This document shows, in pieces, positions 1,122 to 57,714 of a stretch of DNA of 64,000 nucleotides. The stretch's first letter is position 1, and every line of letters starts with the position of its first letter. The notes under the pieces are model-generated. The model was not told where the DNA came from. It made no database searches and saw only the letters and a list, made by a program, of their open reading frames with translations. The DNA lies in sequence record LR756501.1. One strand, given 5' to 3'. The position numbers and the translations under genes are program-made.

Positions 1122-1841
1122 ATGATCTATAGTTTTCCGAAATATTTACAACATATAAAAGAAGGTCTTATCAAAACTTATGATATAGATTTTGTTTTAG
1201 ATAAAAGTATTAGGGAGTTAGATGTTTTAAATGTTAAATATAAAATTGAAAAAAAAGTAAATAATACAATAAAACTAACAATTTACAATTTTAATAAAGT
1301 TTATATTAAACATTTATTTGGATTATTAAATAAAAATTTCACTAATTTGTTTGGTTGGTTTCCAACTTATATGTATATTACCAATTTATCCGGTATGAGC
1401 AATGCTATGAATTATGATGAAAATTATTTAAAAACAACATATGAATATCTAGATGAAGTATCTATTATATATGAATCTAAATTTGATATAGAGACAGAAA
1501 TACCGAATAAGTTATACCATATTTCTATTCAAGAATACATGAATAAAATATTATCTATTGGATTGGTACCAAAAACTAAAAATAAGAAATCTTCACACGG
1601 AGAAAGAATCTATGTTTGTAAAAGCGTCGAAGATTGTTTGTTTCTGGTCGAAAAAATGAAATTTTATTTCTTTAGTAAAGATAAAATAAATACAAATTGG
1701 ATAATTTATGAAATTGTTACAAAAGATTTGAATTTATTATTATATAATGATCCTAATTTTATAAATAAGGGTTATTATTTATTAGGAAATGTGCCTCCGG
1801 TGAATATAAAGGTAGTGTTAAAAGAAAAAAATAACCAATAA
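1122..1841 (+). CDS. putative ADP-ribosyltransferase-fold protein (Tpt1/KptA-like C-terminal domain)
   Basis: LYHIS...ILSIGLVPK...RIY...IYEI...YYLLGNVPP pattern typical of ART-fold domains; N-terminus MIYSFPKYLQHIKE resembles a capsid-targeting peptide. Confidence 0.5.
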   Translation: MIYSFPKYLQHIKEGLIKTYDIDFVLDKSIRELDVLNVKYKIEKKVNNTIKLTIYNFNKVYIKHLFGLLNKNFTNLFGWFPTYMYITNLSGMSNAMNYDENYLKTTYEYLDEVSIIYESKFDIETEIPNKLYHISIQEYMNKILSIGLVPKTKNKKSSHGERIYVCKSVEDCLFLVEKMKFYFFSKDKINTNWIIYEIVTKDLNLLLYNDPNFINKGYYLLGNVPPVNIKVVLKEKNNQ

Positions 1842-1845
1842 AACA

Positions 1846-2859
1846 ATGGCAAAGTTAACGAGTTTTAGCGATTTCGTAGGAGGTGATAAACCTTACTATA
1901 ATCAAACGAAACCTTATATCTATGTTATTAGATATATTATGGGCAAAGACGATTATATTGACGAACTCAAAGAGTATATTCTAAATTATAGAGACGAAGA
2001 GTCTGATTACGAAGACGACGATCATTACGATGAATTTATGGAAAGACTAAAAATCTACGCCGAAGAAGAAAACATGGAAGAGATAGAGGAAATGATACTC
2101 AACTACGAAGACGAAGCTCTTGAAGAAACTGACGACGATGACGACAATTACGAAGAAAGAATGTATAATAAAGAATATTCAGTAGAAGACGATGATTTAG
2201 TAGAAGATCAAGACGTCTTTGATTCAGAAGACGACGTCATACTAGATTATATGGAAACTAACGATGAGATAGAAGACTCAACTTTAAGCGATAAATTAAA
2301 AGATTTTTTAAAGATCGATATAGAATTTGAAGATCTCGGTAAAGACGAAATAGATTACTCTGAATTTGGTGATGATGTTACAGAACCACCTATTAAATAC
2401 GCTGATTACATGGAAAAAGACGTTCAAGATATTGATTACATAGAAGTTACAGATGAAGAAGAAATTATGGAAGAGTCTAGATTGAATAAAGAATGGATAG
2501 ATAAGAAGAGGAAAGAAAAACTGATTGACGAAATAGAAGAAGAAAACGAAGGAGCATTTATTAATTCTGAATTAAGAAGTCCCATAGATAATCTTCAAGA
2601 TGAAATTCCTTTTAGTGAAGAAGAATATGTTAAAAGAGGTAAGAAAAACATAGACGATTTCGTGAAAAAATCTAAAGAGAAGAGACCAGCTTATTTGGAT
2701 AAACTGCCTTTATTTGTACATACAACAGACGGTAAAAAACCTACAAAGAAGCAATTAGAAAATTTAGTTCAAATCATTAAAGAAGAATTCCCCGAAGAAG
2801 AGGAAACAAAACAAAAGGGAGACGATGATGTTATAAAAATAAACGGTGAATACGAATGA
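1846..2859 (+). CDS. highly acidic protein, candidate internal head protein
   Basis: Extreme D/E content; N-terminus MAKLTSFSDF. Confidence 0.7.
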   Translation: MAKLTSFSDFVGGDKPYYNQTKPYIYVIRYIMGKDDYIDELKEYILNYRDEESDYEDDDHYDEFMERLKIYAEEENMEEIEEMILNYEDEALEETDDDDDNYEERMYNKEYSVEDDDLVEDQDVFDSEDDVILDYMETNDEIEDSTLSDKLKDFLKIDIEFEDLGKDEIDYSEFGDDVTEPPIKYADYMEKDVQDIDYIEVTDEEEIMEESRLNKEWIDKKRKEKLIDEIEEENEGAFINSELRSPIDNLQDEIPFSEEEYVKRGKKNIDDFVKKSKEKRPAYLDKLPLFVHTTDGKKPTKKQLENLVQIIKEEFPEEEETKQKGDDDVIKINGEYE

Positions 2860-3089
2860 AAAGAGCCTATTACAGAGGAATACCAATTTATTACGACCCT
2901 TGCACAGAAGATATAAAAGGAAGAAACTGGTTTTACGAAATTCTTGTAGATGTTATGTTGTGGTTAGACGTAAATATATTATTTATGTTTAATCACGACG
3001 AAGGTTTCAGGATACGGATGGAGATAGATGATAAAGATCAGGAAATATTAGGTATGAAGAAGAAAAAAGAAAAAGAAGAGTCCAAGTGA
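2856..3089 (+). CDS. hypothetical protein
   Basis: ATGA-coupled ORF. Confidence 0.6.
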   Translation: MKRAYYRGIPIYYDPCTEDIKGRNWFYEILVDVMLWLDVNILFMFNHDEGFRIRMEIDDKDQEILGMKKKKEKEESK

Positions 3090-3099
3090 CTCTTCTTTT

Positions 3100-3291
3100 T
3101 TACGATACCATTTTACTTTCGTAATTTATAATTTCATTAACTTGTTTTCTTTTCTGGTGATTGAAGAAATGAAATCCTCTTTTATCGTAACCGAGCATGT
3201 TATAAGCAGAGAGAATGTTAAAGATACTATAAGGTACCCATATAATCTCGCCTGATGGAACTTCTACAATATATCGCATTTCCCGTTTCAT
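3100..3291 (-). CDS. hypothetical protein
   Basis: 63-aa ORF directly preceded by a TAATTTTG box. Confidence 0.55.
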   Translation of the reverse strand: MKREMRYIVEVPSGEIIWVPYSIFNILSAYNMLGYDKRGFHFFNHQKRKQVNEIINYESKMVS

Positions 3292-3295
3292 AATA

Positions 3296-3303: not shown

Positions 3304-3347
3304 ATCAAAATCTACCAAATAAAAAAATAAATGTAACACGCCATTTT

Positions 3348-7182: not shown

Positions 7183-8427
7183 ATGAATAACGTAATAACG
7201 ACATACGACGAATTCTTAAATGAAGAATTGTTGGATGAAACTAGAGCTAAGATTTTGAAATGGTGGAACAACTTTCAAAATAGAGATAATGTAATAAGAA
7301 AGATTCACATGTACCTTAACGCTGGTTCGTGGGCAGCTCTTTTCATTTTTATAGCCACTCTTATAGCTATGTGGACACCTACCGATGTTGGTAGAACAAT
7401 ACAATCTTTAATTAAAGAACATAAGTTAATATACTGGGCAATTTTTGCTATGTTGAGTAGTGTAAACACCGGTGATAAACAATTAATGAAGAAAAGAAAA
7501 GAATTAGTAGAAAAGAAAATGAAAGAACTCAGAGAAATGTTCGCTGAGAAAAATTATACAAGTCATTATTACGTTGTTTTGGGCGATAAAAAAGATATTA
7601 AAGCAGTTTTAGATAAACTTAAAGCTGATGATCTTATTACAGACGCAAATGTTATTGATGTTGCTGATGTAACACTGGTTGATTTTTCAAAAACTTATAA
7701 TATCAAAGAACCAGATAAAGCTGCAGATCCTTACGGTGAAGAAGACTGGGCTGATCAAGAAGTTGATGAGAGAGAAGCTTTACAAATATCAAACGCTGCT
7801 AAGAATTTAGAGGATAAATATAAAGTTAATTTTAGAAAAGTAGAAGACGTAGTAGATTACATGGATAGTAAATGGGAAGATTATTCTATAGCTAAGAAAT
7901 TTACAAAATTTGGTAAAACTACATCTAAAATGTGGGATAGAGAATATCTCAGAAGCGTAGATAGAGTAAAACAAAGAAGAGAAGAAAGAAATAGAATACC
8001 TGAACCAGAAGGATTCGATGACGACGATGATGATATGGACGGTATAGATCCTATGGATGATTATTACCTCAATATAATGCCAAATGATTTAGAATATAAC
8101 AAAGTGCCTTTGACTGACGCTGAAGCAAATAATTATAACGTAGGTGATGTTATACCAATTGGAGGTGAAGACTATACAATAACAAGAATTGATACTGAGG
8201 AAGATGAGGCTTACGCTTACCCAAATCGTTTATTACCTAATAACTGGTTAGAAGAAGAAAGAGCAAAGGGCAACGTGAAAGATTTACCGGATGGTAATCG
8301 TAACGGTCAGAATTATCCAAGAGTGGCAGTGAAAATTGAACCACCAAAGAAAAGATTTATGGATAGATTCAAGGATTTTGTAGTTCCTGGGTTTGACGTA
8401 AAACCACCAGAAGTAATGGAAAGATAA
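7183..8427 (+). CDS. CTS-like and DPYGEExW-motif protein with hydrophobic helices
   Basis: MNNVITTYDEFLNEE; hydrophobic AALFIFIATLIAMW and LIYWAIFAML; DPYGEEDW at 7726-7749. Confidence 0.75.
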   Translation: MNNVITTYDEFLNEELLDETRAKILKWWNNFQNRDNVIRKIHMYLNAGSWAALFIFIATLIAMWTPTDVGRTIQSLIKEHKLIYWAIFAMLSSVNTGDKQLMKKRKELVEKKMKELREMFAEKNYTSHYYVVLGDKKDIKAVLDKLKADDLITDANVIDVADVTLVDFSKTYNIKEPDKAADPYGEEDWADQEVDEREALQISNAAKNLEDKYKVNFRKVEDVVDYMDSKWEDYSIAKKFTKFGKTTSKMWDREYLRSVDRVKQRREERNRIPEPEGFDDDDDDMDGIDPMDDYYLNIMPNDLEYNKVPLTDAEANNYNVGDVIPIGGEDYTITRIDTEEDEAYAYPNRLLPNNWLEEERAKGNVKDLPDGNRNGQNYPRVAVKIEPPKKRFMDRFKDFVVPGFDVKPPEVMER

Positions 8428-8429: not shown

Positions 8430-8795
8430 ATGATAAAAGAATTTGAATTATTTATCGAAGGAGTTCGTTGGTACGAAAAAGGGAAACTTGGCGAAAAAGA
8501 AGCTAGAGAAATAGATGAAGTCTTTAAAATAGGTGATAACGTTAGACCAATAGATACGTCTAATATTTATAAATGGCACGATGGGTACGATATAAAACAC
8601 CCTAAACCTGGTGAAGATGGATTCTGGGAAGAATCTAACGCTTTTAAAAATGAAAGTACAGATAGATACTGGGAAGTTAACGGGGTATGTGACTTTAATA
8701 GAGATGGTTACGACGGACAATTAATTCAATTAACTGAGAAATATCCTTGGTATCAAGCAAGAGGATTTAAAAAAGTAAATAAATATGGCGAATAA
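8430..8795 (+). CDS. hypothetical protein with CTS-like N-terminus
   Basis: MIKEFELFIE. Confidence 0.7.
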   Translation: MIKEFELFIEGVRWYEKGKLGEKEAREIDEVFKIGDNVRPIDTSNIYKWHDGYDIKHPKPGEDGFWEESNAFKNESTDRYWEVNGVCDFNRDGYDGQLIQLTEKYPWYQARGFKKVNKYGE

Positions 8796-9456
8796 AATAT
8801 CAATTAGAGACATAGAAGCAGCCATCAAAGAGGCTATGAAAGGCAGCGAAATACAATTCTCAGATTCAGTCTACGAAGAAAAAGATGGTAAACTCCGCCT
8901 CATAATCTTTTTTAATAAACTATTTACTAGCACCAACGTAGTTCTCTATACTAAACTCCTCTTTGAAGTCGATCAAAATAAAGAATACCTTGTTGAAAAC
9001 AGTAGCGGACAAAACTTCTTCAAATATCTTTATGATATTAACTGCCAATATAATATGAAAATTATTGACGATATGAATGATTTTAAGACACAATGGAAGA
9101 AGATTATAGACAGTAATGAATTTGGTCCTAACTTGAAAGTTTTATCTGAATTTATAAAACAGCCTTCTTTTATTGTTAATGAGTGGTTTAATAAGAATGA
9201 CGTTAAGGACATTTCTATGACTGGGTTTAAATACGAACCTAAGATGAAGATAATGCCTTGTAAGATATTATCGTTTCATTTTGTAATGAATGTGAATAAT
9301 TCAGAAGAAGTGGAACTCTTTATAAAGAAAGAAGGTAAGAATGATTTTATGTTAACCTTTACTATTAATGGTAAGAAGATAGATGTAGAGAAACCAGATT
9401 TAAGTGCTTTAGTGCAGACTATTGGTGAAACTCTAAAAGATAATATGGGACAATGA
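8785..9456 (+). CDS. hypothetical protein
   Basis: 223-aa ORF overlapping both neighbours. Confidence 0.75.
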   Translation: MANKISIRDIEAAIKEAMKGSEIQFSDSVYEEKDGKLRLIIFFNKLFTSTNVVLYTKLLFEVDQNKEYLVENSSGQNFFKYLYDINCQYNMKIIDDMNDFKTQWKKIIDSNEFGPNLKVLSEFIKQPSFIVNEWFNKNDVKDISMTGFKYEPKMKIMPCKILSFHFVMNVNNSEEVELFIKKEGKNDFMLTFTINGKKIDVEKPDLSALVQTIGETLKDNMGQ

Positions 9457-9860
9457 TAAAACTATTTGAAGCATATAAGAAGAGTTTAGATGAAATAGAA
9501 AATTTCAAAGATTTTTACGTCGTTGATAATGTGGGCAAATTCTTTGATATGTGTGATAGAAATGCCAATGAAGTTGTTAGATACATGACTCTTTTAAGTG
9601 ATAGTAATAGGATAAAAATAGAGAAACAAGATGGTAATATTATAAAATTCAGAGGGTTTAAATCAACTGATAATATGTCTTCTGCTTATCTAAAAACTTT
9701 TTGGGACGTGAATGTTGAAAAATGGAGATATATAATTTATTTAGTTGATAGCAAAGGTGAAGGATATAGAACGTCAGTTTACGATAAAATAACTTTTTAT
9801 AGACCAAAAGGAATATCATCCCCTTTAGATCCATACGGTGAGGAGGTTTGGGATGATTAA
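9453..9860 (+). CDS. CTS-like and C-terminal DPYGEEVW protein
   Basis: MIKLFEAY...DPYGEEVWDD*. Confidence 0.75.
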   Translation: MIKLFEAYKKSLDEIENFKDFYVVDNVGKFFDMCDRNANEVVRYMTLLSDSNRIKIEKQDGNIIKFRGFKSTDNMSSAYLKTFWDVNVEKWRYIIYLVDSKGEGYRTSVYDKITFYRPKGISSPLDPYGEEVWDD

Positions 9861-10281
9861 GAATTATTCAAAATATATAAAAGAAAGTGTTCAACCTGAC
9901 GGACCACCGCCTTTTAATTTAAAAGAGTTTAATCCTTATAACGACGTTTACGCTTATTATAAAGAAAAATATCAAAGTAATGGTTTTGAGTACGGTGAAT
10001 GGTCTAAAAAGTACGTAGATTACATGTTAAAAATATTAGAAAAAGGTAAATTCGTTATATTTTACGGTAATTCAACTTTAAAAGACGGTGAAAAACAAAA
10101 TAGAGGATATATTAAAGACGCTATACAACCAAATGATCAAAAAGCTGTAATTCATATTATTTTAGATGACGATATTGAATACGGTATGTACCCACACGAA
10201 ACAGTTAGAATATTTGATGAAGAACCTGAAAAAATACATAAAGAAGACGATCCGTACGGTGAAGAAGAATGGTATGATTAA
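9853..10281 (+). CDS. CTS-like and C-terminal DPYGEEEW protein
   Basis: Start moved to in-frame ATG at 9853 (MIKNYSKYIKE); ends DPYGEEEWYD*. Confidence 0.75.
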   Translation: MIKNYSKYIKESVQPDGPPPFNLKEFNPYNDVYAYYKEKYQSNGFEYGEWSKKYVDYMLKILEKGKFVIFYGNSTLKDGEKQNRGYIKDAIQPNDQKAVIHIILDDDIEYGMYPHETVRIFDEEPEKIHKEDDPYGEEEWYD

Positions 10282-12172: not shown

Positions 12173-12508
12173 ATGTTATCTGACGAACAAAGAGAAGAAA
12201 TCAGAAAAGATACAGAATATTTAAAAATATCACTTGATGATTTTAAAAAGAATCCTGATAAATATACAACGCCGGAATATACAACACCAGACGGTTCTGT
12301 TATATGTGTTATAAATTCTAATGAATATACAGCAATAGGAGTTATTTTACACGGACCATTTAAAGGACTTATAAATTCTTTCTTATGGAGTGAACTATCA
12401 CCGATTGGAATAACTAAGATAACAGAAGAAGATCCATACGGTGAAGAACAATGGGAAGGTAATGATATGAAAAATAGAATAAAGAGATTTAGAGATTTTA
12501 TTCAATAA
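12173..12508 (+). CDS. DPYGEEQW-motif protein with C-terminal CTS-like tail
   Basis: ...DPYGEEQWEGNDMKNRIKRFRDFIQ*. Confidence 0.7.
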   Translation: MLSDEQREEIRKDTEYLKISLDDFKKNPDKYTTPEYTTPDGSVICVINSNEYTAIGVILHGPFKGLINSFLWSELSPIGITKITEEDPYGEEQWEGNDMKNRIKRFRDFIQ

Positions 12509-12544: not shown

Positions 12545-13054
12545 ATGTTGAAAATATATCAAGAATTCTTAGCTGTAAATGAAGAGATGGCAGCCTTTGA
12601 TCCATCAGATAGATTAAGATGGGCTGTTCACGAGATCATGATGCGTCTTAAAGACGGTGCTACTATGAAATTCGGTGAAATGAGTAAAGTTTTAAAATCT
12701 GATTTTAAAATAGATATAGCAGAGGATCTCCTTAAAGATATATTTGAAGCGTGGGATAAATATAACGATCCAGATTATAGTTTCTTTAAAAAGGAAGATA
12801 AAAACTGGATGGATGCCTTTTGTTTCCAGGGACACGTTAAACGTAAATGTAGAGATAAACAGAGTTTCGGTAAACACAGAAAGAAAGAAGTTACATATTC
12901 AACTGGCAATGCTTATGGTTATTGGCAAGGTAACAAATGGATACCATATAATACAGGTGTATCTAGAACAGCAAAAGGAAGTAGTGCTCTTGACGATTTA
13001 GAAGACGATAGATGGTTAAATCCTTACGGTAACGGCGTTTATTACGGTGATTAA
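12545..13054 (+). CDS. hypothetical protein with CTS-like N-terminus
   Basis: MLKIYQEFLAVNEE; C-terminal NPYGNG variant motif. Confidence 0.7.
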   Translation: MLKIYQEFLAVNEEMAAFDPSDRLRWAVHEIMMRLKDGATMKFGEMSKVLKSDFKIDIAEDLLKDIFEAWDKYNDPDYSFFKKEDKNWMDAFCFQGHVKRKCRDKQSFGKHRKKEVTYSTGNAYGYWQGNKWIPYNTGVSRTAKGSSALDDLEDDRWLNPYGNGVYYGD

Positions 13055-13066: not shown

Positions 13067-13645
13067 ATGGTGAAGAAATATAAACAATTTCTGTTTGAAT
13101 GGGGGTACGGAGGTGAAGGAGGCGTTGCTTCTAAAGATCCTATCAAAGTTAGAAGTGCCATGCTCACAGAGATAGATCCTATTGAAGCAAGAGAAGAAGA
13201 GGAAGAAGAAGATAATACAGATATTCCTATTCTATCAGACGCGAACGAATCAGTTGATAACGATAATGATCCTTACGGTGAAGAAAATTGGGAAGAAAAT
13301 TTACCAAGTTATAGTTATATGTCGTGGGATAACGGTATTTATAGTTTCTTAAAACAATTGAAAAACTCATTCATAGATGAATGTCTTGCTGGTCTAGAAA
13401 GAGTAGAACAGAAAGACGCGGAAGAATGGTTAGATGATATAAGAAATGAAATAGACGATGGCGATTACAACTTTAGTTCAGAAGAAATTAGAGCCATACG
13501 TGACGATATAGATGATTTACTCGAATTATGTGTGGATAATGAAGATGATGACGATAGAGACGAAGGACCAGATCCAGATGAATATTACGATAGAAAAAGA
13601 GAAGAAGAACATGAAAGATGGGAGAGGGAGTACGAGGATAAATAA
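13067..13645 (+). CDS. acidic CTS-like and DPYGEENW protein
   Basis: MVKKYKQFLFE; DPYGEENW at 13268-13291. Confidence 0.75.
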   Translation: MVKKYKQFLFEWGYGGEGGVASKDPIKVRSAMLTEIDPIEAREEEEEEDNTDIPILSDANESVDNDNDPYGEENWEENLPSYSYMSWDNGIYSFLKQLKNSFIDECLAGLERVEQKDAEEWLDDIRNEIDDGDYNFSSEEIRAIRDDIDDLLELCVDNEDDDDRDEGPDPDEYYDRKREEEHERWEREYEDK

Positions 13646-13958: not shown

Positions 13959-14273
13959 ATGATAACTATGTTCGAGCAATATAATGAATTAGATCCTTAC
14001 GGTGAAGAGAATTGGAGTGATAAACCTAAAATAGAAGAAGGATATTTCTGCATTAGAATGTTAAGAGATTTTAATATTAATCTATCACACGGTAGTTATG
14101 ACGAAGATTACGCAGAAGAATATACAACAGTATTAAAATGTGATGCTGGTGACGAAATTTATGTGGATATAATTTATGTAGAAAATAATTACGTTACTAT
14201 AACAGCAGACACTGGTGAAGATTACGTTGGTGTAGGCAATATACCAACAGACTGTTTTGAAATAGTGAATTAA
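13959..14273 (+). CDS. CTS-like and DPYGEENW protein
   Basis: MITMFEQYNELDPYGEENW. Confidence 0.75.
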   Translation: MITMFEQYNELDPYGEENWSDKPKIEEGYFCIRMLRDFNINLSHGSYDEDYAEEYTTVLKCDAGDEIYVDIIYVENNYVTITADTGEDYVGVGNIPTDCFEIVN

Positions 14274-14745: not shown

Positions 14746-14746
14746 A

Positions 14747-27349: not shown

Positions 27350-27643
27350 TTATTCGTGTACTTTCTTCCCTTGTTTGAATTTTTCTAGCCAAGTCTCAAA
27401 TGGCGTATAATATCCATTTTCTATCATGTGACCGTATTCTTTACCAGCTTCAAACGCCTTTTTCATATGTTTCAAGGATATTTCAGCGCATTCTTCTGCC
27501 GTACCATACACATATTGATAATCATCTTCATGTTTAGCCCAATCTGAAGCTATTATATTCCAATATTCTTTTTCAAAATTTGAAAGAGAATCATATCTTT
27601 CCTCCGAATTTTGATTTTCATTAAATCTCTTAATGTTTGCCAT
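27350..27643 (-). CDS. hypothetical protein with CTS-like N-terminus
   Basis: MANIKRFNE. Confidence 0.7.
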   Translation of the reverse strand: MANIKRFNENQNSEERYDSLSNFEKEYWNIIASDWAKHEDDYQYVYGTAEECAEISLKHMKKAFEAGKEYGHMIENGYYTPFETWLEKFKQGKKVHE

Positions 27644-27658: not shown

Positions 27659-27982
27659 TTAAGAAAAACATTCAGGACATCTACCGTCACTTACAAATTG
27701 AGTTCCACAATCGTCACAAGTTCTTAAAGGCATTTGTGGAGCAGTCTTTCTTCCTTTTATAAAATTATTCCACTGTTTATGATATTTCTTTTTATAATGT
27801 TCACAATTTTTTTCAGATTGTGATAAATAACATTCTGAATCACAAGCTAATCCTGCTTCTGAATTTGGGTATAGATAATCTAAAAAACAACCCCCTTCTG
27901 GACATTCACAAATTTCCCAATTCTCTTCACCGTAGGGATCAAGTTCTTTTTTAGAATCAAACATTTTAAATTTTTTTATCAA
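27659..27982 (-). CDS. Cys-rich DPYGEENW-motif protein (start may be the later ATG, MFDSKK)
   Basis: DPYGEENW at 27917-27940; CECPEGGC, CDSEC, CDDC...CPEC. Confidence 0.65.
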   Translation of the reverse strand: MIKKFKMFDSKKELDPYGEENWEICECPEGGCFLDYLYPNSEAGLACDSECYLSQSEKNCEHYKKKYHKQWNNFIKGRKTAPQMPLRTCDDCGTQFVSDGRCPECFS

Positions 27983-38668: not shown

Positions 38669-39265
38669 TTTATCTAAAATGTTATTTACATTATCTTTCC
38701 AATCTTCTTCCGTGTTAATAACAAAATCTGAATTCTTTATTTTATAATCCTGATTCATAAGTTTATTTAACCTATTATCTATTTCTTCATCAGTATAATT
38801 ATTCCTGTGTTTCAATCTTTTCCTTATAGTATCGATATTAGCGTAAACACAAATAATATAATCGTAATCTTTTTCCACTTTATGCTCGAAAATTAAAGCT
38901 GATTCGTAAAAGATAATCTTCTCACTTTTATGCTTTTCTACAAAATCATACCAATCTTGTCTTAAATGAACTTTGAATATCTTATTTAATTTATCTAACT
39001 CGTTCTTATCATTAAATACTATATTAGCAATATATTTAGTGTTATAAACACCATCTTTATATGATTCTTCACCGAACTCTTTTATTATATCATTTTTCAA
39101 TTCATTATTTCTATTGGCTATACTTTTAGCTTCGACGTCACTATAATAAACTGTATAACCTTTATTCTGTAAATATTTACAAACGGTTGATTTACCAGAA
39201 GCTATACCACCAGTAATGGCTACTGTTACAGGTTTATTAATAAAAGATTCGAATGTTATTATCAT
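38648..39265 (-). CDS. coaE: dephospho-CoA kinase
   Basis: VAITGGIASGKSTV, YYSDVEAK, FYESALIFE, DFVINT; N-terminal MIITFESFIN extension. Confidence 0.9.
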   Translation of the reverse strand: MIITFESFINKPVTVAITGGIASGKSTVCKYLQNKGYTVYYSDVEAKSIANRNNELKNDIIKEFGEESYKDGVYNTKYIANIVFNDKNELDKLNKIFKVHLRQDWYDFVEKHKSEKIIFYESALIFEHKVEKDYDYIICVYANIDTIRKRLKHRNNYTDEEIDNRLNKLMNQDYKIKNSDFVINTEEDWKDNVNNILDKIKKPHF

Positions 39266-39711
39266 AATCCTTTTCTAATTTGAGTTGAGCTTATATTTTC
39301 CACGTCTTTTGTGGCTATCATATAAATAGTTTCTATTTCTGGAGCAACTCCTTTATTATAATTATCAACTGCTTTTTCCCAGGTAAAATCTTTTTCGTCT
39401 CTCATTCCTCTCAACATATATTTAGCACCTATCTTCTTACAGAAATCAACTGTTAATCCGTTGTAAGATTCTACTATTATTTTAGGATTATTAATCTTAC
39501 TTTTTATGATCTCTTTTCTTTCTTCAATAGTATAATGTCCTTTCTTATCTTCATTTATACCTATAGCCACTACTATTTTATCGAAGAGTGGAAGGAATCT
39601 TTCAACTAATTGAATATGACCGTCGTGCACTGGATCGAATGAACCTGGAAAAACGGCGATTCTATCACCGTATTTAAATTTCTCGTTATATGATTTTATT
39701 CTCATAGACAT
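39262..39711 (-). CDS. coaD: phosphopantetheine adenylyltransferase
   Basis: IAVFPGSFDPVHDGH, LRGMRD..DF..E, ISSTQIR. Confidence 0.92.
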   Translation of the reverse strand: MSMRIKSYNEKFKYGDRIAVFPGSFDPVHDGHIQLVERFLPLFDKIVVAIGINEDKKGHYTIEERKEIIKSKINNPKIIVESYNGLTVDFCKKIGAKYMLRGMRDEKDFTWEKAVDNYNKGVAPEIETIYMIATKDVENISSTQIRKGL

Positions 39712-39776
39712 TATATATAAAATTACGAATTTAGATTTTAAAAATGGAGAATTTTATTTTTATATATAGCCATAAG

Positions 39777-40676
39777 ATGAAAACTTTTAATCAATTTATC
39801 AATGAAGGCAAACTAGGACCAGGTTCAAGAGCAGAAACCGCAGGTAAGTTCATGGGTAGAGCTAAAGACGATAAATACGCAGATGAAGTCTTCAACGAAA
39901 TGATAAAAGACTACGAAGAAAGCGGTAAAAATCTTAAAAAGATTCATATTTCATCTAGGTTTAGTACAATGAGATATTATTTTGGAACTACAAGGTGGGA
40001 CGCTGGTAACAGGAAAGTTGGAGATAAAGAAGTAAGAGTCAACGCCGTTAATAATACTGGTGCTTTATTCGAAATTCTTGAATGGCACGAGAATCCAAAA
40101 CACGATCCAAATTACCAGATGGATGTTGATATTGAATGGGAAGGTAACTTTCCACATGTAATTAGAAGAAATGATAATCAGGATAATAGAGATAAAATGA
40201 GAATCTATGATCAGTACGAAGAACAATTTTATATTTCAAGAAATCTTGCTAGAAAAATGATTATTTATTTTGCTAACGAGTACGATAAACAATACCCACA
40301 ATTAAAGAATAATCAAGAAGGCAGAAGTTATTGGCAAATTAAAGCCATAGAAAATGGTGAAAAAATAAGAATTGGATGGGTTGATCAATTTGCTAAGAAC
40401 GGTGTTGAGTGTATATTTGACGTATTTGAACCAGGCGAAAAAGAAAAATATGAAAAATGGATTAAAAACAGTTTTGCTGTAAAGACAAAAAGTAAAGACG
40501 GTTATCCTATAACATTTTGTTATCCAGCACCAGATATAGATGTTGATAAAGTGGTTGATCCTTATGGGGAAGAGGAATGGGGAGATGATTCAGAACAAGG
40601 TGTAATAGAGTGGTTAAACACGTTAACTAAAAAAGAGATTGAAGAAAAAATTCAAAAAGAAATAAACAAATACTAA
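39777..40676 (+). CDS. CTS-like and DPYGEEEW protein
   Basis: Start moved to ATG 39777 giving MKTFNQFINE (T4 IPII/IPIII CTS is MKTYQEFIAE); DPYGEEEW at 40557-40580. Confidence 0.8.
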   Translation: MKTFNQFINEGKLGPGSRAETAGKFMGRAKDDKYADEVFNEMIKDYEESGKNLKKIHISSRFSTMRYYFGTTRWDAGNRKVGDKEVRVNAVNNTGALFEILEWHENPKHDPNYQMDVDIEWEGNFPHVIRRNDNQDNRDKMRIYDQYEEQFYISRNLARKMIIYFANEYDKQYPQLKNNQEGRSYWQIKAIENGEKIRIGWVDQFAKNGVECIFDVFEPGEKEKYEKWIKNSFAVKTKSKDGYPITFCYPAPDIDVDKVVDPYGEEEWGDDSEQGVIEWLNTLTKKEIEEKIQKEINKY

Positions 40677-40696: not shown

Positions 40697-40978
40697 ATGG
40701 GAACGATCGTCAAGACATACGAAGAGTGGGGATTTTTTAAAAAGGAATTGACCCCAGATGAAGAATATCAAAAACAAAAAAAACAAGCTTTAAGAGATAA
40801 GGTGAAACCAGGTAACGCCCCTGAAGTAGAACCAGGTGAAGATGAAGATAAAGAACAAGAAGATAGACAAATGAATAGAAGAGAAGTTAACAAGATTAGA
40901 AATCTCAAAAATGACGATTACGGTGAAGAATTTTGGGAGGACGAAGCAGGAGATAAAAACACAAAATCACCTTGTTAA
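40697..40978 (+). CDS. CTS-like protein with DDYGEEFW variant
   Basis: MGTIVKTYEEW; N-terminus paralogous to 41362-41580. Confidence 0.7.
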   Translation: MGTIVKTYEEWGFFKKELTPDEEYQKQKKQALRDKVKPGNAPEVEPGEDEDKEQEDRQMNRREVNKIRNLKNDDYGEEFWEDEAGDKNTKSPC

Positions 40979-40995: not shown

Positions 40996-41361
40996 ATGGC
41001 AGATTTAAAAAGATTCGAAGAATTCGAATATAATGAAGAAGAAGATGACGAGGCGGTCCAATTCAAAGAAGGAGACAAAGTTGTATATCTTAGACCCGGT
41101 TATAAGCACGATAACGAAGTAGGTACAATTAGACGTGTTCGTAAAGACGGTAGATATAGTATTTTATTAGACGACGATACTCATTTCGCAGCTAGTGCTG
41201 AATACGTTTTCCCTTCTTCAAAGAAGAGAAAAGTGAAAAAGAACGATAGAGTTTATAACGATTACGACGATTGTGGCCAAGGTGGCGGTGGTTGTGGTGG
41301 TGGTTATCGTCCAGCCGACTACGGTGGTTGTGGTGGTGGTAGAAATAATAATTATTGCTAA
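40996..41361 (+). CDS. CTS-like, KOW/SH3-like domain and Gly/Cys-rich tail
   Basis: MADLKRFEEF; FKEGDKVV...GTI..V...YSILLD; GGCGGG twice. Confidence 0.7.
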   Translation: MADLKRFEEFEYNEEEDDEAVQFKEGDKVVYLRPGYKHDNEVGTIRRVRKDGRYSILLDDDTHFAASAEYVFPSSKKRKVKKNDRVYNDYDDCGQGGGGCGGGYRPADYGGCGGGRNNNYC

Positions 41362-41580
41362 ATGGAAAACATAACAACATTCGAAGAATTCTCCTTTTTC
41401 AGAAAGAAAGAGTTAACTCCTGACGAGGAATATAGAAGACAAGCTAAAGAAGCTGAAAGAAATAGACCTAGAGATCCTAATACTAAATATTCTAAATATT
41501 GGGGTATTTATGACGACGGGATGGAAGAAGAGGAAGAAGAAGACGAAGAAGATGAAGAAATTGAATACGATACACCATGA
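41362..41580 (+). CDS. small acidic CTS-like protein
   Basis: MENITTFEEFSFFRKKELTPDEEY; poly-E tail. Confidence 0.65.
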   Translation: MENITTFEEFSFFRKKELTPDEEYRRQAKEAERNRPRDPNTKYSKYWGIYDDGMEEEEEEDEEDEEIEYDTP

Positions 41581-42753: not shown

Positions 42754-42782
42754 AAAAACCCAGTCTCACGACTGGGTTTTTT
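42753..42782. terminator. bidirectional terminator (CCCAGTC family)
   Basis: AAAAAAACCCAGTC-TCAC-GACTGGGTTTTTT; same stem at about 49400 and 63845. Confidence 0.85.
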
Positions 42783-42784
42783 AG

Positions 42785-42985: not shown

Positions 42986-43004
42986 CCAATATATAAAAGA
43001 AAGA

Positions 43005-43362: not shown

Positions 43363-43363
43363 T

Positions 43364-43374
43364 TTCAAAGAACT
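43364..43374 (-). promoter_or_regulatory. boxA-like antitermination element AGTTCTTTGAA
   Basis: Identical 11-mer also at 43700-43710, each directly 5' of a structured domain. Confidence 0.5.
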
Positions 43375-43379
43375 TGATC

Positions 43380-43695
43380 CACAATGTTCGTAAACTTCGT
43401 AACTGTCGTGGACAATTCAAAATAGAACTAAGTCGTAATAGCTGTTACATTTTACAGTAACAATTTAAGTGCGAAGGGCCTCCACCTTTCGGTCATACAC
43501 AGTCTCACTTTCCTCACACACTATTACAGCCGACTGAACCTAAACTTTTACTCAGTCCTATAAGAGCTTCAAATGGAAGCGAGTGCCCAAACTCGCAAAT
43601 GAGGGAAAATAAAGCCTAGTATATAGGGAATTTAAGCCTCACATAACTATCCATATCAATACCCAATTAAGGACTACTTGGAATCGTTTACCATT
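43380..43695 (-). ncRNA. candidate structured RNA, domain A
   Basis: AGTCCT/AGGACT, GCGAGT/ACTCGC, GCTTC/GAAGC, GACTGA/TCAGTC, GTAATAG/CTATTAC, ACC-GAAA-GGT, GTTAC/GTAAC. Confidence 0.55.
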
Positions 43696-44044: not shown

Positions 44045-44215
44045 TTGAAAGACAGACCTTTAAAAGAAAAAGAGAGTATTTGGCTTTGTCCAGACTGTGA
44101 TGGTAAAGGTTATATTGATAAAGGTCAATGTCCTCTATGTAAAGGTAAAGGTGAACTTAGATTTCCTACCACTTCCTCTCAAAAGGATTTCGAAGATCCC
44201 CAGCCTTCTGATTAA
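44045..44215 (+). CDS. small DnaJ-type CxxCxGxG zinc-finger protein (56 aa, TTG start, not in ORF track)
   Basis: CPDCDGKG...CPLCKGKG; overlaps the terminase 3' end by about 50 nt. Confidence 0.5.
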   Translation: MKDRPLKEKESIWLCPDCDGKGYIDKGQCPLCKGKGELRFPTTSSQKDFEDPQPSD

Positions 44216-50311: not shown

Positions 50312-50830
50312 TTATATAGCCTGTCCGCCACCTTGTGCTGGAGGTATCTGAGCTGCTGTCTGTTGTGCTCCTTGTGCTGGAACTTGTGCTTGTCCGCCTT
50401 GTGGAACTTGTGCTTGTGGTTGTGCACCTGGTTGTCCTTGTGCCTGTGGTTGAGCAGGTAATTGAGCTTGAGCAGGTTGTGTTTCATCAAGATCTTCTGT
50501 TTGTGATTGTGGACCTTGTGCTTGTGCACCTTGAGCCTTTGCGTATTGATCACCCAAGATTAAGTTAACAGGAAGGTTTTCGATGCTAACATATGATGTG
50601 ATGATATAATCTGCAATTTCTTCTGATAATTCAACGTCAGAATAGAATTGGCTGATGTTTTTACCACTTTCGTCTTTTACTTTCTTTTTGAAAGCGTTAA
50701 CGAGAGACATAGGAATATCAATACGTTTTCTAACTCTATAAACGTCGTCGACAGCTTGAACGTTTTCAGTTAAAGGTGTGATATTTCTTTTACCTTGAAA
50801 TTCTCCAAATTCGTATAAATTCTTGTTCAT
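50312..50830 (-). CDS. hypothetical protein with Q/A/P/G low-complexity tail
   Basis: MNKNLYEFGEF; AQPQAQGQP repeats; late box at 50853. Confidence 0.75.
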   Translation of the reverse strand: MNKNLYEFGEFQGKRNITPLTENVQAVDDVYRVRKRIDIPMSLVNAFKKKVKDESGKNISQFYSDVELSEEIADYIITSYVSIENLPVNLILGDQYAKAQGAQAQGPQSQTEDLDETQPAQAQLPAQPQAQGQPGAQPQAQVPQGGQAQVPAQGAQQTAAQIPPAQGGGQAI

Positions 50831-50879: not shown

Positions 50880-51179
50880 TTATCTTCTTGTGACCCTTTT
50901 ACTCACCTTTAAATAATATTTTGTTTCACCGTTCTTTTCCATTGATATAACATCCATTATCATATATCCTAGTGGGGAAATTAAATTTGTTATTCTATCC
51001 ATTACCAAATCTTCATCGTTATCATATTTATCCATATTTACTTTTATTTTATCTACTATATCTAAAATTTCCTTTTTATAATTTTTAGGAAAACACTTAG
51101 CAAATTTTTTAACAGATATAAATATGCCTAAAGGTACATTAATAGAAATCTCCTCAAATAATTTAATATATCCTTTCAT
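50880..51179 (-). CDS. hypothetical protein with CTS-like N-terminus
   Basis: MKGYIKLFEE; late box at 51185. Confidence 0.7.
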   Translation of the reverse strand: MKGYIKLFEEISINVPLGIFISVKKFAKCFPKNYKKEILDIVDKIKVNMDKYDNDEDLVMDRITNLISPLGYMIMDVISMEKNGETKYYLKVSKRVTRR

Positions 51180-54699: not shown

Positions 54700-55323
54700 A
54701 TGATTAATTTTATAGCAAACAAACTAAATAATAGATATAAAAGGCTTTTAGAAGAAGATATAGAAAGACAGATAGCTGAAGACGAAAGAAAGAAAGCCGA
54801 AGAAGAAAGATTAGCAAATATACCACTAAATATTCCAGATAATAAATGGTGGGTTAGTAGTAATCCTATTGAAGAGGATAAATGGTACGATGGTGTATTT
54901 TCAAGTGGCACTACAATACCAGATAGTAAATGGTCAAACGGTACTTGGTTAGGAGTATCTGGATCATCTGGTTACGGAGTATCAGGAAGTGCCGGTGTAT
55001 CAGGTAGTGCAGGCGTATCAGGAACTAGAGGACTTAGTGGATCATCTGGTTTTTCAGGGACTTCTAGTTATTCTAATCCAGGTATAAAATACGCTGAATA
55101 TTTAGCAGAACAAATAGATAAATCTATAAATTATCAAGAATATATAGCAGAACAACTTGATAAAAGTATTCAATATAGTGAATATGTAGCTGAGCATATT
55201 GATGTAACAAATTATACAAATTGGATGAACGGTTACGCTCAAGCACACGCTAAACCAAAAAAAGAAGTTAAAAGGGTTTATAGTCAAGAAGATCCTTACG
55301 GTGAAGAAGATTGGTCAGTATGA
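54700..55323 (+). CDS. mosaic protein: GxSGSS repeats, 14-aa YxEYxAExxDKSIx repeats, C-terminal DPYGEEDW
   Basis: Read directly from the translation. Confidence 0.75.
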   Translation: MINFIANKLNNRYKRLLEEDIERQIAEDERKKAEEERLANIPLNIPDNKWWVSSNPIEEDKWYDGVFSSGTTIPDSKWSNGTWLGVSGSSGYGVSGSAGVSGSAGVSGTRGLSGSSGFSGTSSYSNPGIKYAEYLAEQIDKSINYQEYIAEQLDKSIQYSEYVAEHIDVTNYTNWMNGYAQAHAKPKKEVKRVYSQEDPYGEEDWSV

Positions 55324-55640: not shown

Positions 55641-55817
55641 TAAATTGGGTGTTTCGGACCGCATTTTTTTAATATATAATGTGTATTAAATTTTCAAACT
55701 TTAACGAAAGTTTAGTATAGAATAAATGTGGTTCTGCAGAACACTAAAGGCTTTTTCAGGCATTAAATGGAGTAATGGGAGTTATGGCTTTCATTGATAA
55801 AAAAAATCGTATGCATT

Positions 55818-56849
55818 ATGGCAGAGTACAAAGACAAAGATGAAAATTGGATGTTTGATTCATCAAATGACGAACAAAACCAAGAGTTGGCTTTCTTAAA
55901 CAAGGAAACCAAAAACCAAGACGGTATTTATCGTCCAAACGTAAAAGACGCAGCAGACCCTAAGGGTGCTGGTTACAAAGCAACAATCAGATTTCTTAGA
56001 AACGTATTTTTAGATGGCTCGGGCACAGGTCCAGCAGCTATTACAAAGCACGTTCACTATGTTAAACCAGAAGGTTCTTTAGAGGACTATCCAGATTTAG
56101 CAGGATATTATGATTGTGAAAAGAATGTTTCTCAACAAACACCATGTCCGTTGTGCCAAACTTATTGGAAACTTTTTAAATCCAATAATCAGGCAGATGT
56201 TATCAAGTCTGGTTTAATCAAAAGGAGTACTAAATTTTATTCCTATATTATGGTTATCGAAGACGAACAACATCCCGAGTTGGTTGGTAAAATTTTAGTT
56301 TATCCTTACGGAGCTAAGATCAAAGGAAAAATCAATTCAGAAATTAACGGTGATGTTAGTGGAGAGAAATGTAATATTTTCGACTTCGTAACAGGAAAGG
56401 ATTTTAGACTTATTATTAAGATAGTTAAGACTCCAAATCCAAATGGTAGTGGCACAGTTGATATGCCAAACTACGACACCAGCACATTCTTACCATCTTC
56501 ACCTATCAAAATTTGGAACGAGAAAACAAGTAAATTTGTTACTCCTCCAACAACAGAAGATGAAAACGGTAAAATTATGCTCACAGACAAGAAATGGCAA
56601 GCTAAGATCAGAGAAATCATTTTAGCTCGTCCAGCCAATGTAAATCTTGACGACCATACACCTTCAAAGGACGGATGGGACGACGCTAAGAGATCAAATG
56701 TGGAGAAAATTGTTCAGGTTCTTAACGGAAACAGTGTTCAATATGCTGAATCGTCAGTAAAGAAATCTAGTGTGAAAACACCAGCGGCAGAAGTAATTGA
56801 AGAGGAATCTTTCGACGATCTCTTTGATTTCGAAGCAGATGATAAGTAA
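55818..56849 (+). CDS. single-stranded DNA-binding protein (T4 gp32-like)
   Basis: YKATIRFL, H...C...CPLC Zn site, YSYIMVIEDEQHPELVGKI, G.DFRL, NYD.S.F, acidic tail; start moved to ATG 55818. Confidence 0.85.
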   Translation: MAEYKDKDENWMFDSSNDEQNQELAFLNKETKNQDGIYRPNVKDAADPKGAGYKATIRFLRNVFLDGSGTGPAAITKHVHYVKPEGSLEDYPDLAGYYDCEKNVSQQTPCPLCQTYWKLFKSNNQADVIKSGLIKRSTKFYSYIMVIEDEQHPELVGKILVYPYGAKIKGKINSEINGDVSGEKCNIFDFVTGKDFRLIIKIVKTPNPNGSGTVDMPNYDTSTFLPSSPIKIWNEKTSKFVTPPTTEDENGKIMLTDKKWQAKIREIILARPANVNLDDHTPSKDGWDDAKRSNVEKIVQVLNGNSVQYAESSVKKSSVKTPAAEVIEEESFDDLFDFEADDK

Positions 56850-56869
56850 TCTAAATTTTCATTCTAAAA

Positions 56870-56902
56870 GAAAAGCCCTCAATTTTTTGAGGGCTTTTTT
56901 TT
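56870..56902 (+). terminator. rho-independent terminator
   Basis: AAAAGCCCTC-AATTTTTT-GAGGGCTTTT plus Ts. Confidence 0.8.
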
Positions 56903-56914
56903 ATATATAGTGTT

Positions 56915-57172
56915 ATGGAAAAATATATTAAAAAATTCGAACAGGTTAGTGATGAATCTAATAGAATAAAACTATTAGAGGAAGAGATAATTAAAAGAGA
57001 CGAATTGATTTACTCTATGATGAGGAATCTATCACATGGTTACATGAATTTCATGGCTGATAAAACCATAGATATAGATGAAATGCGTAGAAGATTCAAA
57101 ACGGAAGAAGTAGTGAATAGACCATTAGTGAGAGAAAGAATAGATCTCTTACATAAAGATATTATAGGATAA
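56915..57172 (+). CDS. hypothetical protein with CTS-like N-terminus
   Basis: MEKYIKKFEQ. Confidence 0.65.
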   Translation: MEKYIKKFEQVSDESNRIKLLEEEIIKRDELIYSMMRNLSHGYMNFMADKTIDIDEMRRRFKTEEVVNRPLVRERIDLLHKDIIG

Positions 57173-57714
57173 TGAAAGTATTTAAAGTTAACGAGTTATT
57201 CGAAATGAGTCAGACTTATGTTTACAAGCCTGTTTCTGAAAAGAGGAGTGGTTTCAAAAACATGACTACTTATGTTTATAATTTTGTTTCAGACGACGGC
57301 ACTGAATACCTAGTAGATATAGTATTATATTCAAAAACTGTTCTTAATATAAAAACAAATAAACTAAAAACTAAGGTTTTTGCGACCACTTGTTTTGCTA
57401 ATAAGGAAAACTATAACAGAGGTAAAAGATTTAAATGGAAATACAAATTAACTAATAAACATGACGCTATTAAAGTTTTAAATACTGTTATAAAGATTAT
57501 AAAAGATTTTTCAGATAGTCATAATATGGATGAATTTGGAATTAATACGTCAAAAGATAGGTTGGAAACATATAAATATATTTTCAATAAATATTTTAAA
57601 GGTTGGAAAGTTTTTGTTTCTATTGATGATTCGTATTATTTAGATACAAGATTTAATATAATCTGCACAAAAGAATCTAAAGAAGATAATCCAAATAATT
57701 TTATCGTTGCTTAA
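57172..57714 (+). CDS. hypothetical protein
   Basis: MKVFKVNELFE; TAATG coupling. Confidence 0.7.
   Translation: MKVFKVNELFEMSQTYVYKPVSEKRSGFKNMTTYVYNFVSDDGTEYLVDIVLYSKTVLNIKTNKLKTKVFATTCFANKENYNRGKRFKWKYKLTNKHDAIKVLNTVIKIIKDFSDSHNMDEFGINTSKDRLETYKYIFNKYFKGWKVFVSIDDSYYLDTRFNIICTKESKEDNPNNFIVA

Follow-up and report, generated by a model that had tools for sequence, protein, structure and literature searches.

In the largest known phage genome roughly one protein in ten starts with a short tag resembling the signal with which phage T4 loads proteins into its head, and a second, previously unreported tag (DPYGEExW) accompanies it, suggesting that this phage may pack an unusually large set of proteins into its capsid. 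We analysed a stretch of 64,000 nucleotides (the window) that matches the uncultured phage LR756501.1 (735,411 bp) at 100% identity. An original prediction, made from the sequence alone, had noted that about 20 proteins in the window begin like the T4 capsid targeting sequence (CTS). This observation is real and was under-counted. All 15 N-termini that it listed are encoded where it had placed them, and about 12 robust cases plus about 8 weak ones in the window fit its number, but the phenomenon is genome-wide and not local.

To determine how many N-termini carry the tag we trained a scoring matrix (PWM) only on tags outside the window and used internal protein segments as the null. Within the window 10 N-termini scored at p<0.001 and 12 at p<0.01, where 0.07 and 0.7 are expected for 71 genes. 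Genome-wide the PWM gave 89 and 155, where 1 and 10 are expected. The strict motif was 24 times commoner at N-termini than at control positions: in a crude set of 1026 ORFs, ^M[ILVM]xx[FY]xx[FYW] occurred at 67 N-termini (6.5%) and at 0.27% of internal-Met or random positions. The strict pattern matched 0 of 98 T4 genes in two T4 regions (T4 has 35% GC) and 1 of 587 genes in bacterial and archaeal loci. The tag is about 11 residues long with the consensus M-I-K-K-[FY]-x-x-[FY]-[ILV]-[NK]-E-[ASG], and a second form reads MIKKFK[IL]FE.

The strongest cases in the window, at p<0.001, were MNNVITTYDEFLNEE on a 414-aa protein (7183..7227, +; 15.6 bits, the motif starting at residue 5), MIKEFELFIEG on a 121-aa protein (8430..8462, +; 15.8 bits), MIKNYSKYIKE on a 142-aa protein (9853..9885, +; 17.4 bits) whose ATG overlaps the stop of the upstream gene (..TGGGATGATTAA), MVKKYKQFLFE on a 192-aa acidic protein (13067..13099, +; 17.3 bits) and MITMFEQYNEL (13959..13991, +; 16.0 bits). 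For the protein starting at 13959 the best AF2 model gives residues 1-27 a pLDDT<50 and predicts a beta domain for residues 28-104. MKTFNQFINEG (39777..39809, +; 19.7 bits) is in the same register as the T4 CTS. Its start is preferable to that of the longer ORF from 39744 because a promoter-like box, TTTTTATATATAG, lies at 39757..39769 (+), inside the longer ORF and 7 nt upstream of the ATG at 39777. MIITFESFINK (39233..39265, -; p=0.0001) precedes a dephospho-CoA kinase (CoaE) domain that begins at residue 14 in Pfam. MADLKRFEEFEY (40996..41031, +; 12.8 bits, p=0.0007) and MENITTFEEFSF (41362..41397, +; 12.0 bits, p=0.0007) complete this set together with a case that the original prediction had missed, a TTG start at 27982 on the minus strand that reads (M)IKKFKMFDSKKELDPYGEENW, with the tag MIKKFKMFDSK (27950..27982, -; 12.8 bits, p=0.0007) followed by ELDPYGEENW. 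Two more scored at p<0.01, namely MIKLFEAYKKS (9453..9485, +; 6.3 bits, p=0.007), on a 135-aa protein that also ends in DPYGEEVWDD, and MEKYIKKFEQV (56915..56947, +; 8.3 bits, p=0.003), which has a box TTTTATATATAG upstream.

The remaining examples do not stand on their own. These are MANIKRFNENQ (27611..27643, -; p=0.022), MKGYIKLFEEI (51147..51179, -; p=0.06) with a box TTTAATATATAG upstream, MIYSFPKYLQHIKE (1122..1163, +; p=0.09), which fits the strict pattern, MLKIYQEFLAVNE (12545..12583, +; p=0.09), which fits the strict pattern and the T4-like YQEF core and has a box TTTTATATATAG directly upstream, MKVFKVNELFE (57172..57204, +; p=0.10) and MGTIVKTYEEW (40697..40729, +; p=0.14). A weak tag-like extension, MSMRIKSYNEKFKYG (39667..39711, -; not significant on the PWM), lies in front of a cytidylyltransferase-like (CoaD-type) domain that begins at residue 20 in Pfam.

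The tag is selected at protein level. Synonymous codons vary and F/Y swaps are common, and in orthologues of 30-75% identity the two aromatic positions are kept in 90% and 81% of pairs while positions 6-7 vary. It is also portable, since 126 tagged proteins fall into 109 unrelated BLAST groups once the tags are masked, and the tags lie outside the catalytic domains of CoaE, PPK2, DHH, radical SAM, nucleotidyltransferase and methyltransferase proteins. Only the 5 closest of about 120 CoaE homologues carry the extension, so the tag was added to CoaE only in this phage clade.

The second portable tag, DPYGEExW, was found at 102 sites against 0.1 expected, 40 of them at the extreme C-terminus. It is usually preceded by K-R-[VI]-[FY]-S-x-L and followed by acidic residues, and lies at the extreme C-terminus, just after the N-terminal tag or between domains. 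Within the window, copies at the extreme C-terminus are DPYGEEVW at 9828..9851 (+; followed by DD and the stop), DPYGEEEW at 10249..10272 (+; followed by YD and the stop) and DPYGEEDW at 55291..55314 (+; followed by SV and the stop), the last on a scaffold-repeat protein. DPYGEEQW lies near the C-terminus of the 111-aa protein (12431..12454, +), DPYGEEEW near the C-terminus of the protein that starts at 39777 (40557..40580, +), a variant DDYGEEFW near a C-terminus (40913..40936, +) and a degenerate copy NPYGNGVY at a C-terminus (13019..13042, +). Internal copies are DPYGEEDW at 7726..7749 (+) and DPYGEENW at 13268..13291 (+), and DPYGEENW directly follows the N-terminal tag at 13992..14015 (+) and 27917..27940 (-). 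The motif sits on 8 of 20 fragments or paralogues of virion proteins, including a catalytically dead S77 protease and a scaffold-repeat protein, and on 80 of 1006 other proteins (OR 7.7, p=1e-4).

Outside the window the genome encodes a T4-type portal (Portal_T4, 1e-69), a major capsid protein (Gp23, 2e-25) and a gp21-family (S77) prohead protease. A profile of the protease domains, built without T4, hit the T4 gp21 structure 5JBL at 5.6e-12, and the His (GEFDHP) and Ser (VSSRA) motifs are conserved. The protease is fused to a scaffold-like region, and this 807-aa fusion has 14 matches to the core pattern, 13 of them in tandem 14-residue repeats of the YSEYIAE type, the same core as that of the tag and of the T4 CTS; 11-14 matches are kept in nine relatives of 52-85% identity. 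The core taken independently from the scaffold, [FY]xx[FY][ILVM]xE, is 17.6 times commoner at residues 1-13 than inside proteins. Three scaffold-type repeats (YAEYLAE, YQEYIAE and YSEYVAE; 55081..55206, +) also occur within the window in a 207-aa protein (54700-55323) that matched the protease-scaffold fusion by phmmer over residues 128-169 (E=4e-14). Three of four paralogues next to the portal gene carry the core motif.

The likeness to the T4 CTS is more than superficial, as the T4 10-mer MKTYQEFIAE scored p=0.0027 on this phage's own tag PWM. A hydrophobic-x-Glu site lies in residues 6-16 of 78% of tags against 27% of other proteins, and the residue after the Glu is A, S or G in 31 of 58 tags (53%) against a background of 17.5% (p=6e-10). 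T4 gp23 reads FGSFLTE|A and gp24 reads LRE|S at their cleavage positions, and the capsid protein of this phage has WMSEYAE at residues 55-61. The T4 CTS is a 10-20-residue N-terminal propeptide that loads unrelated proteins and is cut after Glu (PMC8442874, PMC5694885, PMC3012670).

Our preferred reading, which we hold with about even confidence, is that the N-terminal tag is a portable amphipathic propeptide imitating one unit of the phage's own scaffold repeat, Y-S-E-Y-I-A-E. In this view the tag helix would pack into the scaffold core during head assembly through the same contacts that hold the scaffold repeats together, so that the attached protein would be enclosed when the T4-type capsid shell closes. 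The protease would then cut after the Glu, as T4 gp21 does, freeing the cargo, which would stay in the head and may leave with the DNA. DPYGEExW most likely acts as a second docking peptide for a phage-encoded partner in virion assembly. What our analysis demonstrates are the motifs, their statistics, portability and clade specificity, as well as the T4-type head genes, the conserved catalytic His and Ser and the scaffold repeats, whereas docking, cleavage, encapsidation and injection are inferred without proteomic or structural evidence. The interpretation given in the original prediction, that this phage packages and injects a far larger protein payload than T4 and that many of the genes follow a putative late box, is thus only partly supported.

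Several features argue against a simple copy of the T4 system. The number is extreme, with at least 89-155 N-tagged proteins plus about 59 proteins with DPYGEExW only. Tagged proteins are acidic, with a median pI of 5.4-5.6 against 6.2 for untagged ones, while T4 internal proteins are highly basic (PMC8442874). The putative cargo includes metabolic and other enzymes (PPK2, CoaE, tRNA nucleotidyltransferase, DeoC, dCMP deaminase family, radical SAM, DHH and methyltransferase proteins), and the metabolic ones are not expected inside a head. Of the strict tags 22%, including that of CoaE, have no hydrophobic-x-Glu site. A C-terminal DPYGEExW followed by only 2 residues makes sense as a binding site for an as yet unidentified partner, not as a cleavage site. 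The tagged set is not confined to late or structural regions, and the absence of tags from 12 T4-core homologues is not significant (about p=0.2). The putative late box itself is real: its family is enriched about 30-fold upstream of genes, mostly at -35 to -15, and it precedes the portal, protease, sheath, tube, wedge and TerL genes. Its link to the tag is however modest, as it precedes only 39% of strictly tagged genes against 20% of untagged ones (OR 2.5, p=0.001), and it may be a general promoter.

A less likely possibility is that the tags are docking peptides for a phage-built structure or hub other than the capsid, such as a replication or assembly factory, a proteinaceous compartment or a multi-enzyme complex, resembling the terminal encapsulation peptides of bacterial microcompartments; the likeness to the scaffold repeat would then reflect generic amphipathic-helix chemistry. 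In accordance with this, many tagged proteins are cytoplasmic-type enzymes, tagged proteins are acidic and the tags occur at either terminus, joined by linkers. The DPYGEExW DNA pattern occurs in cellular genomes only at about the level of a rough chance estimate of ~70 (72 single hits in 596 Gb), and the partner should therefore be phage-encoded. Yet the exact scaffold-repeat core and the T4-like cleavage features (Glu plus a small following residue) are not needed for such a role, DPYGEExW is enriched on paralogues of head and tail proteins, and no compartment gene was identified, although without a systematic search.

Two further readings appear improbable to a similar degree. The N-terminal tag could be only a protease-removable propeptide that keeps enzymes or effectors inactive until the S77 protease is active, with no role in packaging, as suggested by the cleavage-site-like features and the existence of a protease paralogue. 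However, the free paralogue lacks the catalytic His and Ser, and eleven residues lying outside the folded domains are unlikely to inhibit such varied enzymes. In addition gp21-type proteases are not known to become active outside proheads, although the papers examined describe cleavage after core and shell assembly without stating this exclusivity. Alternatively the tags could be inherited baggage, a conserved 5' (and 3') cassette spread by duplication and recombination between gene ends, as proposed for the T-even internal-protein locus, with little present function. Codon choice in DPYGEExW is indeed skewed (TAC 73% against 36% genome-wide, CCT 66% against 36%), and tagged genes often sit in tandem arrays with overlapping stop and start codons. 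Against this, DPYGEExW is 90% identical where the rest of the protein is 45% identical, the key positions of the N-terminal tag are kept while others drift, synonymous sites vary, the tags are on 109 unrelated bodies including a captured CoaE, and the motifs persist across many IMG/VR contigs.

It is still less likely that the N-terminal tag is a short membrane-binding amphipathic helix (basic plus aromatic residues) that brings proteins to the inner membrane: MIKKFKLF has Lys on one face and Ile/Phe on the other, but the tag is only about 2.5 helical turns long, is followed by Glu and acidic linkers and matches the soluble scaffold repeat. Least likely is an artefact of AT-rich codon usage or an mRNA-level translation-initiation signal, since despite biased codons 2-3 (ATA 76% of Ile codons, AAG 54% of Lys codons), a genome of 31% GC and genes lacking Shine-Dalgarno sites, the motif is 24-fold commoner than at internal Met positions in the same proteome and nearly absent from the T4 and cellular genes given above, its conserved positions are aromatic residues encoded by four different codons, and its register relative to the ATG varies by 0-6 residues.

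The sheath gene of the window matches LR756501.1 at 100% identity, and the window starts at base 565,061 of this record, an unannotated record of an uncultured phage of 735,411 bp, which we infer to be the 735-kb Mahaphage of Al-Shayeb et al. 2020, predicted to infect Bacteroidetes (PMC7162821). The window has a GC content of 31%, contains no N and lacks Shine-Dalgarno sites, and it encodes a tail sheath, a tail tube, a baseplate wedge, a large terminase and a ribonucleotide reductase. To place it in its genomic context we examined the whole record using a crude set of 1026 ORFs. To determine if the N-terminal sequences resembling the T4 capsid targeting sequence (CTS) were more than chance we trained a position weight matrix (PWM) only on tags outside the window, with internal protein segments as the null. 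Ten window N-termini out of 71 genes scored p<0.001 and 12 scored p<0.01. The original prediction that about 20 proteins of the window carry such a start therefore held as an observation, and all the N-termini it quoted are present, although about eight of its examples are weak and one good example, at 27982(-) with a TTG start, had been missed. The start at 39777 is supported by a promoter-like box that lies inside the longer ORF.

The phenomenon extends to the whole genome. The strict pattern occurs at 67 N-termini, 24 times the rate at internal Met or random positions, and the PWM gives 89 N-termini at p<0.001 and 155 at p<0.01 where 1 and 10 are expected. The motif starts at residues 1-8, and many apparent internal hits follow a Met in an over-extended ORF. 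In control sets the strict pattern matched 0 of 98 T4 genes and 1 of 587 cellular genes. None of 12 homologues of T4-core replication and packaging proteins is tagged, in a sample too small for this absence to carry weight. An N-tag-like sequence, IKTFESFINDKA, was also found at the C-terminus of a 105-aa protein (window 42436-42753 (+)) and is nearly identical to the N-tag MIITFESFINK of the dephospho-CoA kinase CoaE encoded 3 kb upstream.

The consensus of the tag is M-I-K-K-[FY]-x-x-[FY], followed either by E or by [ILV]-[NK]-E. Phe and Tyr use all four codons in genome-like ratios, and orthologues of 30-75% identity keep the two aromatic positions in 90% and 81% of pairs while positions 6-7 drift, pointing to selection at the protein level. 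We could reject that the tagged proteins form a single paralogous family, since after masking of the tags 126 tagged proteins fall into 109 BLAST groups and 91 of them have no paralogue. The tags lie outside catalytic domains: the CoaE domain begins at residue 14, the CoaD-like domain at residue 20 and the DHH domain at residue 35, whereas the PPK2 domain lies at 166-390 and the radical SAM domain at 72-220. Among about 120 CoaE homologues only the five closest (at least 65% identity, from large phage contigs) have the 11-13-residue extension, all others starting 2-6 residues before the P-loop strand, so that the addition is clade-specific. AF2 modelling of the 13959-14270 protein gave one usable model of five in which the tag region (residues 1-27) is predicted to be unstructured and is followed by a predicted beta domain with only non-significant SH3-like Foldseek matches (E>=0.05); this is weak evidence. 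AF2 of the 9853-10278 protein was uninformative (mean pLDDT 40). A homologue search with the 104-aa tagged protein found only itself.

While reading these proteins we found a second motif, DPYGEExW, with 11 copies in the window and 102 sites in 88 proteins genome-wide against 0.1 expected. Of these sites 40 are at the extreme C-terminus, usually W plus two residues and then the stop, 18 lie just after an N-tag and 44 lie between domains. C-terminal copies are preceded by K-R-[VI]-[FY]-S-x-L. The motif co-occurs with the N-tag (OR 4.6, p=2e-9) and is 90% identical in orthologues whose remaining sequence is 45% identical. A DNA-level repeat was ruled out because its codons vary, although TAC and CCT are over-used. 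Its degenerate DNA pattern gave at least 120 hits in IMG/VR, with several copies per contig, the same placement and the same N-tags. In 596 Gb of cellular genomes there were 72 single hits, close to our rough chance estimate of about 70, and a tblastn search of a tag module against 50,697 GenBank phage records found only this genome. A full-text literature search for DPYGEE found no phage paper, and neither motif is mentioned in the paper describing the 735-kb genome (PMC7162821).

The head module lies outside the window, at 72-78 kb of the record, in the order portal, protease-scaffold and capsid protein. It comprises a T4-type portal (record 71969-73795; Portal_T4, 1e-69), an 807-aa protein (record 73913-76336) and a Gp23-type capsid protein (record 76340-78166; 2e-25). 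The first ~145 residues of the 807-aa protein are a gp21-family (peptidase S77) protease domain. Its Pfam S77 score of 22.9 bits is below the 27-bit cut-off and single-sequence phmmer searches of the protease domains against the PDB found nothing, but a profile built without T4 hits the T4 gp21 structure 5JBL at 5.6e-12, and the catalytic His (GEFDHP) and Ser (VSSRA) motifs are conserved and align with those of T4. The next part of the protein, about residues 330-500, is scaffold-like, with 13 tandem copies of a 14-residue repeat with the core Y-S-E-Y-I-A-E, the whole protein having 14 matches to the core pattern. Between 11 and 14 matches are conserved in nine relatives of 52-85% identity. 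All relatives retrieved keep the same repeat, and the one distant contig (L160) was too short for co-variation of scaffold repeat and tag to be compared across clades. That core, taken on its own, is 17.6 times commoner at residues 1-13 of other proteins than inside them. Just upstream of the portal gene (record 61904-66169 (+)) lie four tandem paralogues of 341-361 aa, three of which start with the scaffold-type core in shifted registers (YKNFVNE, FNGYVYE, YNGFLFE), making them good candidates for major internal head proteins.

Features of a cleavage site were also seen. A hydrophobic-x-Glu site lies in residues 6-16 of 78% of strict tags, the remaining 22% having none, and the residue after the tag's Glu is A, S or G in 53% of cases against a background of 17.5%, which is only indirect evidence for cleavage. 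The sites of T4 itself read FGSFLTE|A (gp23) and LRE|S (gp24), and the capsid protein of this phage has WMSEYAE at residues 55-61.

Taken together the best-supported reading is that the N-tag copies one scaffold repeat and would co-assemble into the prohead core to be removed after Glu, as is the T4 CTS (PMC8442874, PMC5694885). DPYGEExW would probably dock proteins to a phage-encoded assembly partner. Supporting this are its presence at the end of a protease paralogue that is probably inactive and of a scaffold-repeat protein (window 54700-55323 (+)), and its enrichment on fragments or paralogues of capsid, portal, sheath, protease and scaffold proteins, of which 8 of 20 carry it against 80 of 1006 other proteins (OR 7.7, p=1e-4). 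The motifs, their statistics and placement, their occurrence on unrelated proteins and the T4-type head genes are direct results of the analysis, whereas docking, cleavage, packaging and injection, the ability of the tag to load a protein into the prohead and any binding of DPYGEExW to a shell or partner are inferred. The original prediction, that the phage packages and injects a far larger protein payload than T4 and that many of the tagged genes follow a putative late box, is thus only partly supported. Against it stand the sheer number of tagged proteins, cargo that includes metabolic enzymes, its acidic pI, the fifth of tags without a Glu site and the modest link to the TAATATATA box, which precedes 39% of tagged genes against 20% of untagged ones (2.5-fold, p=0.001). 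This promoter-like box, T(T/A)TAATATATA(G/A), lies mostly 15-35 nt upstream of start codons in front of about a quarter of all genes, including the portal, protease-scaffold, sheath, tube, wedge and terminase genes; examples are 39757-39769 and those upstream of 12545, 13959, 29036, 51179(-) and 56915, and in the record those upstream of portal and protease. That it marks late genes remains a supposition. An A-rich AAAAATAA element lies next to start codons in place of a Shine-Dalgarno site.

Among the alternatives, a docking system for a structure other than the capsid is the most plausible but still unlikely. A propeptide with no packaging role and the legacy of a recombination cassette are both improbable, and a membrane-binding helix slightly more so. 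An artefact of composition, codon usage or mRNA is the least likely, being rejected by the internal-Met and random controls, the T4 and cellular controls and the varying synonymous codons.

[quoted passage not shown] Both are N-terminal peptides of about 10 residues with the core aromatic-x-x-aromatic-[IL]-x-Glu and a small residue after the Glu, attached to otherwise unrelated, fast-evolving proteins in a genome that encodes a gp20-type portal, a gp23-type capsid protein and a gp21-type protease, and the T4 10-mer scores 8.9 bits (p=0.0027) on the PWM of this phage. The likeness does not extend to the cargo. T4 internal proteins are small, highly basic and DNA-associated, whereas here the median pI is 5.6 for N-tagged proteins and 5.4 for those with DPYGEExW only, against 6.2 for untagged ones, and enzymes of up to 488 aa and multidomain proteins of up to 1233 aa are tagged. 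The present system also differs in having about 90-155 bearers instead of a handful, a variable offset from Met1, a second form (MIKKFKLFE), a scaffold that is fused to the protease and itself built of repeats of the motif, and the companion DPYGEExW tag, which has no known counterpart.

A second comparison is with the propeptides of head and ejection proteins of the giant phages phiKZ, 201phi2-1 and SPN3US, which are cut by gp21-like proteases at [A/S/G]-x-Glu (PMC5694885, PMC10052503). These phages have large T4-related heads, with many internal proteins processed after Glu, as is inferred for the tagged proteins here, and likewise a diverged protease paralogue, and their propeptides are thought to target proteins into the prohead. 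However those propeptides are mostly 80-130 residues long and share no common short motif, their P3 residue is small and not Ile or Leu, and only about 8-19 processed proteins were reported. For DPYGEExW a working analogy, and not a claim of membership, is offered by the cargo-loading peptides of encapsulins and the encapsulation peptides of bacterial microcompartments, short N- or C-terminal peptides joined by linkers that load diverse enzymes into a protein shell. There is no sequence similarity, the shell here would be a DNA-filled phage head, and the only support for binding to it is the association with virion-protein paralogues. The C-terminal capsid-binding ends of scaffolding proteins and prohead proteases (P22 gp8, HK97 protease) sit where DPYGEExW does on the scaffold-repeat protein and on a stand-alone protease-fold protein, but DPYGEExW is acidic and aromatic, not a basic helix-turn-helix, and is also found on about 85 other proteins.

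A bolder possibility, which we consider doubtful, is that the largest known phage uses the two portable tags, one an N-terminal mimic of its scaffold repeat and the other the previously undescribed DPYGEExW, to pre-load well over 100 different proteins into its capsid. Together they mark about 15% of the proteome, including kinases, nucleotidyltransferases, phosphoesterases, methyltransferases and many orphan proteins, which would then be delivered with the DNA as a packaged proteome on the scale seen in giant eukaryotic viruses and far beyond T4 or phiKZ. If the tags are loading signals they give a sequence-only way to read the likely virion cargo of uncultured huge phages, show that head-internal payloads can scale to a large share of a proteome and offer two compact tags, with a defined scaffold partner, for heterologous procapsid assembly. 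If they are not capsid signals, two clade-wide, highly conserved terminal motifs on about 190 unrelated proteins still point to an unknown protein-sorting or docking system in these phages.

The protease paralogue is a stand-alone protein of 178 aa (record 11314-11850 (-)) in which the catalytic His is replaced by Tyr (GELGYP) and Ser-Ser by Arg-Pro (FRPRAAG), so that it belongs to the protease fold family but is probably inactive. It carries a C-terminal DPYGEENWSE and ends in RVYNELDPYGEENWSE, a tail that in a MAFFT alignment lines up with FRIYDISDESKINDLF of the predicted active protease-scaffold fusion. More generally, the genome carries at least 20 small ORFs that are fragments, internally deleted mosaics or diverged paralogues of its own capsid protein, portal, sheath, protease and scaffold, for example window 76-273 and 270-839 (+) and, elsewhere in LR756501.1, 276342-276932(-), 542326-542892(+), 552409-552918(-), 142020-143048(+), 48028-48549(+) and 553796-554236(-). 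Window 270-839 matches capsid-protein residues 30-78 and 387-408. A Gln/Ala/Gly/Pro-rich low-complexity stretch (AQPQAQGQ...) is shared by a 172-aa window protein (50312-50830 (-)), the scaffold fusion (residues about 520-560) and the portal C-terminus.

Three separate ORFs are similar to the T4 gp17 large terminase, of 755, 181 and 390 aa (window 44166-46433 (-) and 58805-59350 (-), record 699854-701026 (-)), the terminase being either split or duplicated. The large subunit of the ribonucleotide reductase (1160 aa; window 60358-63840 (+)) has HNH-endonuclease matches at residues 421-486, suggesting an intein or an inserted homing endonuclease. Rfam and tRNA scans of the window found nothing above threshold. 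In the region 42756-43600, however, a strong hairpin-plus-T-run terminator at 42756-42790 is followed by an ORF-free island of about 800 nt with a GC content of 41-47% in a 31% GC genome. No Rfam family reaches its gathering score there and the only match is sub-threshold, to the Bacteroides sRNA BTnc231 at 42752-43009(-) (29 bits against 80), leaving the island as a candidate structured non-coding RNA.
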